Assembly (NCBI GenBank): GCA_977020255.1
Contig: CDROCS010000253.1
Location: 1,178,001-1,242,000 of the forward strand
Direction of reading: 5' to 3'
Source: Obrimoposthia wandeli
Lineage: Eukaryota
Length of the DNA: 64,000 nt
The position numbers and the translations under genes are program-made. The notes under the pieces are model-generated. The model did not search any database, had not been told where the DNA came from, and saw only the letters and a list, made by a program, of their open reading frames with translations. Positions 38,684 to 44,468 of this stretch are shown here, piece by piece (within the stretch, counting starts at the first letter, position 1; each line of letters starts with the position of its first letter).

Positions 38684-39280
38684 TTATTTGTTGGCCATTA
38701 AAAATTGCCATTGCTCACTAAAATCAGTGCTTGGCTTTTTACTGTAGCCGGACCGAACATATTGACTGATTTTACCTTCAGCGAACGATACTAATAGGCT
38801 AGCCAAAGCGGCTTCACTAATAGTAAAGGTTTTACCTTCACGTAATTTTCGTTCTCGTAATACTTGTTTAAATTGTGATTCTAATTTTTCAAAAAATAGA
38901 TGAACTCTACCGTGTAAACGTTCGTTTTCACCCATTAATGCATCGCCTGTTAATATTCTACACATACCAGGATTTCGCTCAGAAAAAACGATTAAAACAT
39001 GCAGGATGTGATGGCAGCGTACTAAGGCTTCTTTGTGATCCGTTAAAATCAAATTGATACGCGAAAAGATAGATTCTTCGATAAAGTCGATTAAGCCTTC
39101 AAACATGCGTGCTTTGGACGGGAAATGACGATAAAGAGCCGCCTCTGAAAAGCCGACTTCAGCCGCTAGTTTTGCGGTAGTGATACGCTGCCCAGGACAG
39201 TTTTGTAACATTAACGCTAAGGATTCTAATATTTGGTGTTTACGGTTTGGCTTCTGGTTTTTGTTTTGTGTGGCGACCAT
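38684..39280 (-). CDS. slmA: Nucleoid occlusion factor SlmA
   Basis: [48 protein letters not shown]; downstream of coaBC. Confidence 0.95.
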
Positions 39281-39357
39281 ATAAAAATATTCTCTACTGT
39301 TATCGTTCTGTCCATCAAGCTAATGAATAACTTGTTCTCAAGATAAATTCAATTACC

Positions 39358-40569
39358 TTATTGCTGAGTGTTTTTGGCTAAATAATGTTGATTGATTAAT
39401 GATACTAGCTGTTTGGCAACAATTTGCTTATTGGCTAGCGGAATTTCGATTTTATCAATGGCACTATAGAGGGTTAAAGCATTATCATCACTATTAAAAC
39501 CTTGCCCTGCTTTAGCAACATCATTAGCCGCGATTAAATCTAAATTTTTACGCATTAACTTGCCACGAGCATAGTGTTCAACGTTTTGCGTTTCTGCCGC
39601 AAAGCCAACGATGAAAGGTTTATTAGCTAACTTTGCCACATCAGCAACGATATCATGATTTTTGATAAGAGAAATTTGCATATGATCATTATCTTTTTTG
39701 ATTTTTTCATCGGCAATATTGGCAACTCGATAATCGGCTACCGCTGCACAGGCGACAAAAGTAGTTGCTTGTGGAACATAAGTTAGTGTTTGTTGATGCA
39801 TTTGTTCGGCACTAGTCACTTGGATCAGCTCACAGCCTATAGGAGCGGTTATATTTACGGGGCCAGAAATTAACGTCACCTGAGCGCCAGCACTTAATGC
39901 GGCATGAGCAATGGCATAGCCCATTTTTCCTGAACTATGATTGGATATATAACGAACCGGATCTATTGCTTCACGTGTTGGCCCAGCAGTAATTACCCAA
40001 TGCTGACCTTGTAAGTATTTGTCGACAAAAAAATCGCTACTTAAGGTAACTAATTCATTCACATCTAACATGCGACCTAAACCGATATCACCACAAGCCT
40101 GTTCGCCAGTACCAGGGCCCCAAATATGATGTCCCCACTGTTTTAATGTGCTGATGTTAACTTGTGTTGCTTTGGCATGCCACATTTGTTGATTCATTGC
40201 AGGAGCAATAGCTATTGGTGCGCTAGTTGCCAAGCATAATGTTGATAGTAAATCATTGGCCATGCCAGCGGTAATACGAGCAATAATATCTGCAGTGGCA
40301 GGAGCTATAATAATTAAATCAGCCCATTTAGCTAGTTCAATATGCCCCATGGCAAGCTCAGCCTGACTATCGAGTAGGCTGTCAGAAACATGGTTGCCCG
40401 ACACTGCTTGAAGCGTTAATGGCGTAATAAAGGCTTTTGCACCTTCGGTCATAACCACGCGTACATCTGCGCCATGATCTTTGAGTCGACGCACTAATTC
40501 TGGTGTTTTGTAGGCAGCGATGCCACCAGTAATACCCAGTACTATTTTTTTGTCCTGAAGAATTTGCAT
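39358..40569 (-). CDS. coaBC: Phosphopantothenoylcysteine decarboxylase/ligase CoaBC
   Basis: [53 protein letters not shown]. Confidence 0.97.
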
Positions 40570-40703: not shown

Positions 40704-41441
40704 ATGGTAAAAGAATTAGCGTTAAAAGAATCACAGTTAAAGGAATTAGCTTTAAAAAAAAACACCTTAAAAAATTGGCCTGAAATGGAGAGGCCACGCG
40801 AGAAGTTAGTAAATTTAGGCTCATCAAGTTTAAGTGATGCGGAGTTGTTGGCCATATTTTTACGCACGGGAGTGAGGGGTTGCAATGTGGTCGATCTTGC
40901 TCGGCAATTATTGAGTAGCTTCGGTAGTCTTAGCGCTATATTTTCTGCAAGCCAAGAAGACTTTTGCGCAAGACATGGGCTTGGAGTGGCGAAATATGTG
41001 CAATTACAAGCCTGTTTAGAAATGTCTAAACGTTATTTGGCCGAGAAAATTAAAGAGAGCGATTGCTCTTTAACTTCTTCACAAGCTACACGGGATTATT
41101 TACTCAGTGAACTGCGCTTAGAAAATCGAGAAATATTTGCGGTGCTTTTCTTAGATAATCAGCATCGGGTGTTAACCTTTGAACGATTATTTTTTGGTAC
41201 CCTTAATGCTGCAGCCGTGTATCCCCGAGTTGTCGTAGAACAAGCGCTAAAACATCATGCAGCAGCGGTAATATTAACCCATAATCATCCATCCGGTATT
41301 GCGGAAGCAAGTATTGCCGACAAACAAATAACGACTAAATTAATTCAAGCACTACAATTGATTGATGTGCGTGTATTGGATCATATAATTGTGGCAGGAC
41401 ATCAGTGCTATTCTTTTGCGGAACATGGAGAACTTGTCTAA
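40704..41441 (+). CDS. radC: RadC family JAB-domain protein
   Basis: ERPREKL..G...[20 protein letters not shown]...S..D JAMM motif, LDHIIV; divergent from coaBC. Confidence 0.95.
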
Positions 41442-41561: not shown

Positions 41562-41873
41562 ATGGTAGAAATCAGTGGTGATGAGGCGGATCGTCGCCAA
41601 TCATTTCGTTTAGATATGGAAAAAGAGTTAGTTGATATTATTTGGTTAGATGAACAAGGCAAAGAGCATCGTAAGAAAATAGCTTGTCTTGATTTTTCTC
41701 GTGGCGGGTTAAAGATTGATTGTGATCAGCTTTTACCTTTGCAAGCCCCGGTAACAATTGTATTTAAATCGGCCAGTACGAGTAGTCAAAAACTTTATGG
41801 CAAAGTGTTGCGATGCATTAAGCAAGAAAACGGATGGTATGAAGTGGCATTGACATTAGATCACAATGACTAG
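41562..41873 (+). CDS. Stand-alone PilZ domain protein
   Basis: RRQSFR (RxxxR) and DFSRGG (D/NxSxxG) c-di-GMP-binding motifs. Confidence 0.9.
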   Translation: MVEISGDEADRRQSFRLDMEKELVDIIWLDEQGKEHRKKIACLDFSRGGLKIDCDQLLPLQAPVTIVFKSASTSSQKLYGKVLRCIKQENGWYEVALTLDHND

Positions 41874-41959
41874 TGTTACCAACAGAACTGATGCGTATAT
41901 AAAGTGAAATAATAGTCGTTGAACTGCACTTAGCTTGGTAAGCCATATGTTGTAGCTAT

Positions 41960-41973
41960 TACGCTGCAGCGTA
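41960..41973. promoter_or_regulatory. Perfect 14-bp palindrome upstream of parA
   Basis: TACGCTGCAGCGTA. Confidence 0.5.
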
Positions 41974-41977
41974 TTAA

Positions 41978-42001
41978 TTTGATAGTAGTTTTGATAGTAG
42001 T
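41978..42001 (+). repeat. Perfect 12-bp tandem direct repeat directly upstream of the parA RBS
   Basis: TTTGATAGTAGT twice. Confidence 0.85.
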
Positions 42002-42016
42002 AAAGGATAAAAGGGT

Positions 42017-42685
42017 ATGATGATTTTAGTGGGTGGTGAAAAAGGTGGTAGTGGCAAGAGTTGTTTAGCACAGAATCTCGCCGTATATTTCGCCCGAAAT
42101 AAGAAAGCAATTGTCTTAATGGTTGATTGTGATCCCCAAAGAACAACTTCTGATTGGATACAAGCAAGAAATAGTGACCCATCTCTCCCCGCAATTAACT
42201 GTATTCAATTGTACGGAAAAATTCGTAATGACTTACTGAGTTTAGTGCAACACTATGATTATGTCATTGTCGACTGTGGTGGCCAAGATAATTTAGCTTT
42301 ACGCGCTGCTATGTCAGTGGCTGATCACGTAATTATTCCCTTAAGACCTAAAAGACGAGATTTGAAAACGGTACCACATATGGAAGATATGCTCAGTACT
42401 TGTAAAATGGTGAACCCGAAGATGATGGCCTCTTTTGTTATCACTCAATGTCCGGCATTACCAAACCAAATGGGTAGGATACTTGAAGCAAAAGAAGTAT
42501 GCAGGTCTTATGGTATTAATGTTTTAGATGCCATAACCTATAATCGAAATATTTATGATGATAGTGAAGAATTGGGCTCTTCTGTTATTGAAATAGATCC
42601 TACAGGTAAAGCCGCTCAAGAGATGTTCAATATTGCCGAAGAATTACTGGCGATGGAACCGGATAATTCCCATGAGTTTAACTGA
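42017..42685 (+). CDS. ParA/MinD-family ATPase (short, no N-terminal HTH; type Ib/ParF-like)
   Basis: GGEKGGSGKS deviant Walker A, VDCDPQ, VIVDCGG, 222 aa. Confidence 0.92.
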   Translation: MMILVGGEKGGSGKSCLAQNLAVYFARNKKAIVLMVDCDPQRTTSDWIQARNSDPSLPAINCIQLYGKIRNDLLSLVQHYDYVIVDCGGQDNLALRAAMSVADHVIIPLRPKRRDLKTVPHMEDMLSTCKMVNPKMMASFVITQCPALPNQMGRILEAKEVCRSYGINVLDAITYNRNIYDDSEELGSSVIEIDPTGKAAQEMFNIAEELLAMEPDNSHEFN

Positions 42686-43109
42686 TTTAAAGAAAGGCAA
42701 GGATAGCAAAGTAAAAAAGAAAAAATTCACCATTGATGAGTTTATTTCTGATGCGGAAAACTATGCAAAAGGTGCGCCTAAAATTGTTAGTGAATTAACA
42801 AATAATGAACCCGCGAGTCATAAACTCAGCCTCCAGCAAGCGATTAGTGAAGCTAAGCGTTATGTTGAAATGACTGAGATAGAACATCAGCAAGCAGTAG
42901 CAGTGAAAGCAGGTGTTAGAGCTAGATTGGCTAAACCCTTTAGGCGAGCAACATTTACGCTCAGTGAAGAAGCGATAGAGCAGTTACAAAATTTATCTGA
43001 AGGGTCAGACTTAGCTAAATCACATATATTGCGTATTCTTATCGATGAATTATGTAATAAAGAACAAAATGAGCAATTGAAGAAATTACTGCAATCAGGA
43101 ATAGATTAA
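42672..43109 (+). CDS. CopG/ribbon-helix-helix partner protein
   Basis: Likely start ATG 42672 overlapping the parA end. Basic N-terminus; C-terminal RRATFTLSEEAIEQLQNLS...KSHILRILID (beta-alpha-alpha). Confidence 0.8.
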   Translation: MSLTDLKKGKDSKVKKKKFTIDEFISDAENYAKGAPKIVSELTNNEPASHKLSLQQAISEAKRYVEMTEIEHQQAVAVKAGVRARLAKPFRRATFTLSEEAIEQLQNLSEGSDLAKSHILRILIDELCNKEQNEQLKKLLQSGID

Positions 43110-43160: not shown

Positions 43161-43185
43161 AAAGCTCACAATCCAAGTGAGCTTT
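43161..43185. terminator. Hairpin after the ParA-RHH cassette
   Basis: AAAGCTCAC-aatccaa-GTGAGCTTT. Confidence 0.6.
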
Positions 43186-43368
43186 GTCTTTCTATTCACT
43201 ACTTAACTATATGAATTTTTTTGATAAATACTGTTTTTTTAGTATTTTACTATTAAGACTAGTATTCGTTATTCAGTTTCTCTATAATATGCCACCTTTT
43301 TCAGGATCCCGAGACGACGGTCTTGGGGAACATATAGCTCGAGCTGAAATTAATATTGGAGTACTCAC

Positions 43369-43605
43369 ATGTCTAAAATTTGCCAAGTAACAGGCAAAGT
43401 GCCAATGGTTGGAAACAACCGTTCTCACGCAAGAAACGCGACTCGTCGTCGTTTTTTACCTAACCTTCAATCTCACCGTTTTTGGGTTGAGAGTGAAAAT
43501 CGTTTCGTTAAATTACGTTTAACTCCGAAAGGAATGCGTATTATCGATAAAAAAGGTATTGATGTAGTTTTAACTGACATCCGTGCCCGTGGCGAAAAAG
43601 TTTAA
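43369..43605 (+). CDS. rpmB: 50S ribosomal protein L28
   Basis: [17 protein letters not shown]...TRRRFLPNL. Confidence 0.98.
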
Positions 43606-43967: not shown

Positions 43968-44468
43968 ATGAAATTATCTCGGACAGGCTGGAACAACGTC
44001 ATTATTTTTTCAGTGATGACTATAATTTTATTGATCAATGCTACCAACGATAAACTATTTCCTAATGAAGTAAATGGAAATAATGGTGAGCAATTAATTC
44101 TGCCGCAACATGGTGTTATTTTAACATTGGCAATTGATTTTTCAGCAAGCCAAAGTGTGTTATTAGAACGCGTCGGTCGTAGCTGGCAGTTAACCGCTAA
44201 AGGGTTAATACTGGAAAAAACGGAACAGCAGATTGAGCAGATGATGTTTGCTTGGCAACAAAGTAGCGGCTTAGTACAGGCAGCTGAAATTATGATTGAT
44301 GGTGCTCAAGGTGTCGCCGTAAAAATTGCTTTGGCTGGTGAGTCACAAGTCAGAACCTTCACACTATACCCATTAGATGACCAATTATTAATTTATCAAC
44401 AAAAAGATAATGTTTGGTTAGCGCTACCTGCAACTCTAGCTCAACAATTATTACCTGTTAGTTTCTAA
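43968..44468 (+). CDS. Hypothetical membrane-anchored protein
   Basis: MKLSRTGWNNVIIFSVMTIILLIN N-terminal TM; upstream of mutM. Confidence 0.8.
   Translation: MKLSRTGWNNVIIFSVMTIILLINATNDKLFPNEVNGNNGEQLILPQHGVILTLAIDFSASQSVLLERVGRSWQLTAKGLILEKTEQQIEQMMFAWQQSSGLVQAAEIMIDGAQGVAVKIALAGESQVRTFTLYPLDDQLLIYQQKDNVWLALPATLAQQLLPVSF

Follow-up and report, generated by a model that had tools for sequence, protein, structure and literature searches.

The 64,000-nucleotide (nt) stretch of contig CDROCS010000253.1 analysed here (hereafter, the window) is a segment of a Colwellia chromosome, with C. demingiae and C. psychrerythraea as its nearest relatives. Between radC and rpmB it carries a three-gene module (positions 41562–43109) that encodes a PilZ-domain protein, a ParA ATPase and a small ribbon-helix-helix (RHH) protein, hereafter called the partner. 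[quoted passage not shown]

The module is a constant feature of the family. A genome scan yielded 80 loci from Colwellia, Thalassotalea, Cognaticolwellia, Pseudocolwellia, Litorilituus and Thalassomonas, and PilZ, ParA and partner are present together in all 80, with radC before and rpmB after them wherever there is enough flanking sequence, and with radC 5′ of PilZ in every full-length locus. Across these loci, ParA is 87–98% identical to the window copy, close to the conservation of ribosomal protein L28 (rpmB, 88–100%), and the corresponding ranges are 77–99% for slmA, 63–92% for radC, 38–90% for the partner and 34–91% for PilZ. Ratios of nonsynonymous to synonymous substitution rates (dN/dS), from comparisons in which dS is mostly saturated, are 0.024–0.034 for ParA within the Colwelliaceae, 0.07–0.155 for the partner and 0.07–0.18 for PilZ, with one PilZ outlier at 0.31.

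The local gene order is pepD(−), slmA(−), coaBC(−), radC(+), PilZ, ParA, partner, rpmB, rpmG, a gene for a protein of 166 amino acids (aa), mutM and coaD(−). The Escherichia coli counterpart reads slmA-dut-coaBC-radC-rpmB-rpmG-mutM-coaD, with radC adjoining rpmB as the original prediction had stated, and the module therefore sits within an old syntenic block. We considered a recent horizontal insertion and rejected it on the grounds of a G+C content equal to that of the flanks, synteny in 80 of 80 loci and saturated dS. The original prediction described the genes as inserted between radC and rpmB; its location stands, and in place of a recent event these comparisons indicate that the module is an ancient, family-wide fixation.

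Separately from the standard locus, a second copy of the module occurs in Colwellia sp. TT2012 (L070:2957–6048, on a contig shared with L020). Here, an IS66 transposase fragment and a 3′ piece of radC precede PilZ, ParA and partner, and a gene for a TonB-dependent receptor follows, with no rpmB. The ParA of this copy is sister to that of the Colwellia lineage ALOHA_DT_126 (support 100/99), and the copy looks as if it had been horizontally acquired or transposed. Two further loci, labelled Endozoicomonas sp. G2_1 (L060) and a ‘Pseudoalteromonadaceae’ metagenome-assembled genome (L077), show the typical Colwelliaceae order and identity from pepD to coaD; these taxonomic labels are probably wrong or outdated.

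Our analysis places the ATPase among the small ParAs of type Ib. All 81 ParA copies are exactly 222 aa long with invariant Walker motifs, and the deviant Walker A motif begins at residue 9, which leaves no room for an N-terminal helix-turn-helix (HTH), in agreement with the original prediction. Among NCBIfam models the best match is NF041546 (‘ParA family partition ATPase’, an equivalog), which aligns over its full length with 141.9 bits, below its 180-bit cut-off, and the best solved relatives in the PDB are TP228 ParA (5u1g) and ParF (4dzz), with E values of about 1e-14. Membership in chromosomal ParABS (Soj/Spo0J) systems is not supported: the match to Soj proteins is confined to the P-loop region, and the partner has no ParB domain. 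The NCBI label MipZ, attached to the Agarivorans and Alteromonas orthologues, was likewise rejected, since the Pfam MipZ profile covers only ParA residues 74–124 (profile positions 94–144 of 262) and the partner is an RHH protein.

The partner gene begins within parA, and the 14-nt overlap is kept in all loci, which implies translational coupling. In an alignment of 26 diverse orthologues (A1), an invariant N-terminal peptide, MSLxDLKK, is followed by lysines, then by a conserved helix, FTxDEFIxDAxNYAxG, and a variable linker, and the C-terminal block is almost invariant: KPFR(R/H)ATFTLSE..AI.QL..L....LAKSHI(I/L)RILI. The single-sequence match to an RHH domain is weak (Pfam RHH_1, E 0.052). 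The family profile, however, matches CopG in the PDB (E 5e-4), strand on strand and helix on helix, and the Salinimonas orthologue scores above the Pfam RHH_1 and RHH_3 cut-offs. An AlphaFold model of the monomer, with a predicted local distance difference test (pLDDT) score of 66, contains an extended stretch, helices at residues 99–112 and 116–127 and a further helix, which fits an RHH fold; residues 1–20, a lysine-rich tail, have low pLDDT. A Foldseek search with this model gave no match at E ≤ 0.001, and its best local matches, all weak, are RHH proteins: Reg576, CopG (TM-score 0.76 on the target), Arc, YiiF, MatP and CdbA. Searches of the PDB with the N-terminal 42 residues gave chance matches only. 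The overlapping 145-aa partner with a lysine-rich N terminus and a C-terminal RHH domain, as originally described, is thus borne out by the overlap, the CopG profile match and the Salinimonas scores, and the structural model did not contradict it. From Colwelliaceae to Alteromonadaceae, the strand residues of the RHH domain hardly vary, which is an argument for a conserved DNA site that the partner would read.

The third protein is predicted from its sequence to belong to the PilZ-domain receptors of c-di-GMP. The Pfam score and both ligand motifs, RRQSFR (RxxxR) and DFSRGG (DxSxxG), uphold the original assignment; among 81 orthologues RxxxR is invariant and DxSxxG is mostly kept, with serine replaced by alanine in a few. 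The Colwellia protein is 31% identical (E 9e-16) to a PilZ of Agarivorans that also lies 5′ of a ParA orthologue, and the two have a common signature, DRRxSxRLDxExE.

The ParA–partner pair has its closest relatives outside Alteromonadales chromosomes on Acinetobacter plasmids. The closest plasmid ParAs in PLSDB, at 54% identity, lie beside repM (for example, on pApiHUM1c) and are followed by a gene for a 95-aa protein that aligns with the RHH region of the partner (hhalign probability 90%, E 1.6e-6). By eye, this protein has N-terminal LxxLKK and DEFISxAE motifs in common with the partner, although tblastn found no plasmid homologue of the partner. Further ParAs, at 41–46% identity, come from three contigs (one Rep3 plasmid-like, one phage-like and one other short contig), and in each case a small gene downstream of parA overlaps it. 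Because of their homology to the Acinetobacter pair and to the pairs on plasmid-like and phage-like contigs, ParA and partner are best regarded as both descending from a plasmid type Ib cassette, as had been proposed. The Acinetobacter pairs differ from ours in being plasmid-borne beside a replication gene, with no PilZ or GGDEF neighbour and a shorter partner. A plasmid source for the whole trio was rejected: no PLSDB plasmid has a related PilZ next to a ParA, and the plasmid relatives of PilZ, all in Shewanella xiamenensis, do not lie beside one.

Like the type Ib systems TP228 ParF–ParG and pSM19035 delta–omega, the Colwellia pair combines a small deviant-Walker-A ParA lacking an N-terminal HTH with an RHH partner that is encoded directly downstream, overlaps parA and has a predicted flexible, basic N terminus. 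Unlike them, the pair is chromosomal, core and family-wide, its partner has roughly double the length and carries an additional conserved helix as well as a linker, a search for centromere repeats next to the genes found none, and a dedicated PilZ gene is attached. Among the open reading frames (ORFs) of 38.5–46.5 kb there is no gene for an HTH-type ParB, a replication (rep) protein or an integrase, consistent with the earlier statement that ParB-HTH and rep genes are missing. Lying between the core genes radC and rpmB with no rep or integrase gene nearby, the module is a type Ib descendant and not a working plasmid par locus.

The same plasmid relatives could point to a factor for incompatibility or defence, a par copy on the chromosome that interferes with partition when plasmids carrying related par systems arrive, for which ParI offers a precedent (PMC9178275). 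We give this explanation scarcely any credence, because the module is a core gene set at a fixed position under very strong purifying selection, has no mobile-element genes nearby and has no related PilZ–ParA unit on PLSDB plasmids. PADLOC likewise gave no real match; that of ParA to a CRISPR-associated Csx3 model is weak (E 7e-5, 20 bits) and is taken as generic P-loop similarity.

Beyond the Colwelliaceae, related ParAs recur in several chromosomal settings. An exhaustive ParA search at 50% clustering returned 48 representatives below E 1e-30, and wider contexts came from the nearest representatives, from a metagenome scan and from a word search that started from the Agarivorans ParA. Chromosomal ParAs of the Alteromonadales group together in one clade (support 99/97) that excludes plasmid and integrase-linked ParAs, and members beyond the Colwelliaceae that have a partner are 71–76% identical to the window copy. 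Four arrangements can be distinguished. Type A, PilZ-ParA-partner, occurs in Colwelliaceae at radC/rpmB, in Agarivorans aestuarii between a SPOR protein gene and hslVU, on a frameshift-ridden metagenome contig at nnrS-psiE/lytS, and at a metagenomic locus (L172:605–2222) that lies 3′ of a motB-motA stator pair and a fabH-like gene, before pepA. Type B, ParA-partner-TPR-GGDEF, is found in Salinimonas and in every metagenome locus of that type long enough to show it (about 25), in every case flanked by a hydrolase gene and a sigma54 regulator; in Alteromonas flava the context is the same except that the partner is missing (ParA-TPR-GGDEF). Type C, ParA-partner followed by a binding-protein gene (SBP) and a HAMP-GGDEF gene, occurs at locus L174 and, in a partner-less version, in Shewanella marina. 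In type D, ParA and partner have no adjacent c-di-GMP gene; this is the case in Paraglaciecola, where a hybrid kinase and a receiver follow, and at loci L131–L136 and L154. The original proposal of a c-di-GMP link through PilZ gains support from this gene order, with PilZ syntenic with ParA in all Colwelliaceae loci, in Agarivorans and in two metagenomic lineages and with GGDEF genes in sister lineages, and the synteny of PilZ with the ParA–RHH pair in relatives held when examined. The pattern fits a ParA/RHH machine that in most lineages is wired to c-di-GMP.

The partner has been lost in three lineages, Alteromonas flava (L082), Agarivorans sp. (L083) and Shewanella marina (L092). The ParAs left behind are 48–55% identical to the window copy, compared with 71–98% for partnered ones, and their branches measure 0.7–1.0 substitutions per site, 10–30 times longer than those of most partnered ParAs (0.06 or less). 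This fits a ParA that is constrained mainly by its work with the partner. In the Agarivorans sp. locus, PilZ is still found beside ParA after the loss, which suggests that PilZ may contact ParA.

The spacers of the module bear on how the three genes are expressed. Across the family the PilZ–parA spacer is 27–170 bp long and variable in sequence. A −10-like box, ACTA(C/T)A(A/C)T, lies 41–89 nt before the parA ATG in 54 of 79 distinct spacers, and GTAGT lies 15–20 nt before it in 41 of the 79 (shuffled mean 5.3); both counts are inflated by relatedness, and both elements cross genus boundaries. It is thus probable that parA has a separate promoter in most species. The spacers of Thalassotalea eurytherma and T. 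loyana, at 27 and 48 bp, offer little space for a promoter. All three genes, and the PilZ–parA junction, are covered by metatranscriptome contigs that come from close relatives in three studies; the contigs also extend from inside parA across the partner gene as far as the start of rpmB, and, being assembled, they neither prove a single transcript nor exclude DNA carry-over. In the window the spacer also holds a palindrome, TACGCTGCAGCGTA, and a perfect 12-bp tandem of TTTGATAGTAGT. We rejected the two as a conserved centromere or operator: the palindrome is confined to the closest strains, the 12-mer is single-copy in the closest relatives (L002 and L003) and in one metatranscriptome contig, and neither is enriched elsewhere in the window. 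The tandem is a duplication unique to this strain, and through it the conserved GTAGT element, immediately 5′ of the parA ribosome-binding site, is present twice.

Several of these observations weigh against the favoured reading. The −10-like box before parA in most species means that PilZ need not be co-transcribed with it, and the type D lineages carry ParA and partner with no c-di-GMP gene adjacent. GGDEF genes are numerous in these genomes, so that a single adjacency could be due to chance. No centromere-like repeat array was found beside the module or elsewhere in the 64-kb window, and AlphaFold modelled the partner as a monomer and with low confidence.

The first two of these points, together with the faster evolution of PilZ relative to ParA, are what would be expected if PilZ were a mere neighbour, with ParA and the RHH protein acting independently (perhaps with an auxiliary role in segregation or in organising the nucleoid) and the adjacency of PilZ or GGDEF genes devoid of functional meaning. 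We give this explanation very little weight. PilZ has moved with ParA into at least four chromosomal contexts and is retained beside it after partner loss, the spacer shrinks to 27–48 bp in the two Thalassotalea species, and three c-di-GMP gene architectures recur.

The favoured reading suggests a mechanism in which an ATP-bound ParA dimer would bind the nucleoid and the partner would dimerise and bind specific DNA through its RHH domain. The basic N-terminal peptide of the partner, MSLxDLKK, would stimulate the ParA ATPase, and c-di-GMP-loaded PilZ would bind ParA or the partner and alter the ATPase cycle, such that the position or the expression of partner-bound DNA would track the cellular c-di-GMP level. 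A wider proposal is that, across the Alteromonadales, c-di-GMP gates the ATPase cycle of a chromosomal ParA/RHH system, by way of a dedicated PilZ adaptor in Colwelliaceae and Agarivorans and of a dedicated diguanylate cyclase in Alteromonas. We hold this extension tentatively, at somewhat less than even odds.

The strongest rival holds that the module is a transcriptional switch, in which the RHH partner is a regulator, ParA an ATP-dependent co-regulator and PilZ or the cyclase the c-di-GMP input, with expression and not positioning as the output. Type Ib RHH partners are autorepressors, ParF is a precedent for a co-regulator of ParG and omega for a global regulator, and the partner has weak PHROGs matches to ‘transcriptional repressor’ families. 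The ACTA(C/T)AAT box and GTAGT overlap the likely parA promoter and ribosome-binding region, no centromere array was found, and the neighbours at other loci are signalling genes (GGDEF, histidine kinase and response regulator, sigma54 regulator). We nevertheless consider a switch unlikely: a plain repressor would not need a ParA held at about 90% identity with intact Walker motifs, and the fast decay of ParA after partner loss suggests a joint mechanical cycle.

Positioning of a protein cargo, as in McdAB or ParC/ParP-like systems, would make the partner an adaptor and PilZ, the TPR-GGDEF cyclase or another complex the cargo, so that c-di-GMP signalling would be organised in space or inherited evenly. 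There are established cases of orphan ParAs with a protein as positioned cargo (PMC9178275), and the product of the associated gene, whether the receptor PilZ or a synthase that bears a TPR domain for protein interaction, is more easily seen as a client than as an input. However, no conserved linked cargo gene exists besides the c-di-GMP genes, and the near-invariance of the DNA-facing RHH strand across families is unexpected if the domain serves dimerisation alone. As this near-invariance argues for a conserved DNA site, we rank DNA cargo or DNA regulation above protein cargo, which we regard as decidedly improbable. In the favoured reading, c-di-GMP may either control the module or have its signalling organised by it.

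Literature searches returned no description of a PilZ–ParA–RHH module, and the nearest known systems each differ from it in part. [quoted passage not shown] As in Colwellia, an RHH DNA-binding protein and a single-domain PilZ protein are there tied to chromosome organisation and c-di-GMP; unlike in Colwellia, cdbA and cdbS are not adjacent and the pair includes no ParA. CdbA is a weak fold match of the partner (rank 26), with no sequence homology beyond the RHH and PilZ folds. The archaeal SegAB system resembles ours in combining a chromosomal ParA-type ATPase with a small site-specific DNA-binding partner and in being thought to act on the chromosome; it differs in its archaeal origin, and we know of no second-messenger component in SegAB. 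Among orphan ParA-like ATPases, BcsQ is part of a c-di-GMP-controlled machine. Roles beyond plasmid partition have been described for this group as a whole, which includes ParC/ParP, PpfA, McdA/McdB, PomZ, BcsQ and ParI (PMC9178275, a 2022 review). Their partners, however, are not RHH proteins, and none has a PilZ or GGDEF gene as a fixed neighbour of a ParA–RHH pair.

The coordinates of the module and its surroundings are given in Table 1. Downstream of the partner gene, CTATAATATGCCACCTTTTT looks like a −10 box together with the start of a very conserved rpmBG leader.

Table 1 Features of the module and its flanks (positions in the window)
Feature	Position	Strand	Evidence or remark
radC, upstream flank	40704–41441	+	Pfam RadC and UPF0758_N; NCBIfam PRK00024, 263 bits
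Single-domain PilZ protein, 103 aa	41562–41873	+	Pfam PF07238, E 1.7e-7, 32 bits (cut-off 22.5)
PilZ RxxxR motif	41595–41609		R12–R16 (RQSFR)
PilZ DxSxxG motif	41691–41708		D44–G49 (DFSRGG)
PilZ–parA spacer	41874–42016	+	Degenerate copy of the family −10-like box at about 41919–41932
Palindrome TACGCTGCAGCGTA	41960–41973		In PilZ–parA spacer
TTTGATAGTAGT, perfect 12-bp tandem (two copies)	41978–42001		In PilZ–parA spacer
Type Ib ParA ATPase, 222 aa	42017–42685	+	NCBIfam ParA_partition, E 1.9e-41
ParA deviant Walker A	42032–42061		KGGSGKS, from residue 9
ParA partner, 145 aa	42672–43109	+	ATG 14 nt before parA stop; overlap
Partner N-terminal peptide MSLxDLKK	42672–42695		Alignment A1
Partner conserved helix	42726–42773		Alignment A1
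Partner RHH domain	42933–43055		Strand RRATFTLS and helices at residues 99–110 and 114–127, with one more helix after; A1, profile, AlphaFold
Terminator-like hairpin 3′ of partner gene	43161–43185	+	Consensus scan only: 9-bp stem, weak T-run
rpmB promoter/leader element CTATAATATGCCACCTTTTT	43282–43301	+	In 74 of 75 partner–rpmB spacers; belongs to rpmBG, not to the module
rpmB, downstream flank	43369–43605	+	ORF; 88–100% identity in relatives; adjoins radC in E. coli
166-aa ORF	43968–44468	+	Between rpmG and mutM; no Pfam or NCBIfam match

Two differences from E. coli lie outside the module. The 166-aa ORF occupies the same place in most Colwelliaceae loci (34–92% identity), whereas E. coli has no gene there, and Colwellia and its relatives lack dut at the place (window positions 39280–39358) that it occupies in E. 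coli, between slmA and coaBC.

The targets positioned by ParA/MinD ATPases include plasmids, chromosomes, carboxysomes, chemoreceptor arrays and division sites, and we know of no member in which a nucleotide second messenger sets the cycle by way of a dedicated PilZ protein or cyclase. The module cleanly illustrates the domestication of a plasmid par cassette for a core function of the chromosome, with a plasmid-type pair that has been kept through the whole history of one bacterial family and has moved round chromosomes together with c-di-GMP genes. If gating by c-di-GMP is true, the system would be the first ParA-type positioning machine under the direct control of a second messenger, and where a chromosomal locus or a signalling complex is placed, or how it is inherited, would be tied to whether the cell is planktonic or attached to a surface. 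If the coupling is functional, the way in which c-di-GMP acts on nucleoid-based positioning or on gene control could be tested directly in marine heterotrophs that are abundant, including culturable Colwellia, Agarivorans and Alteromonas.

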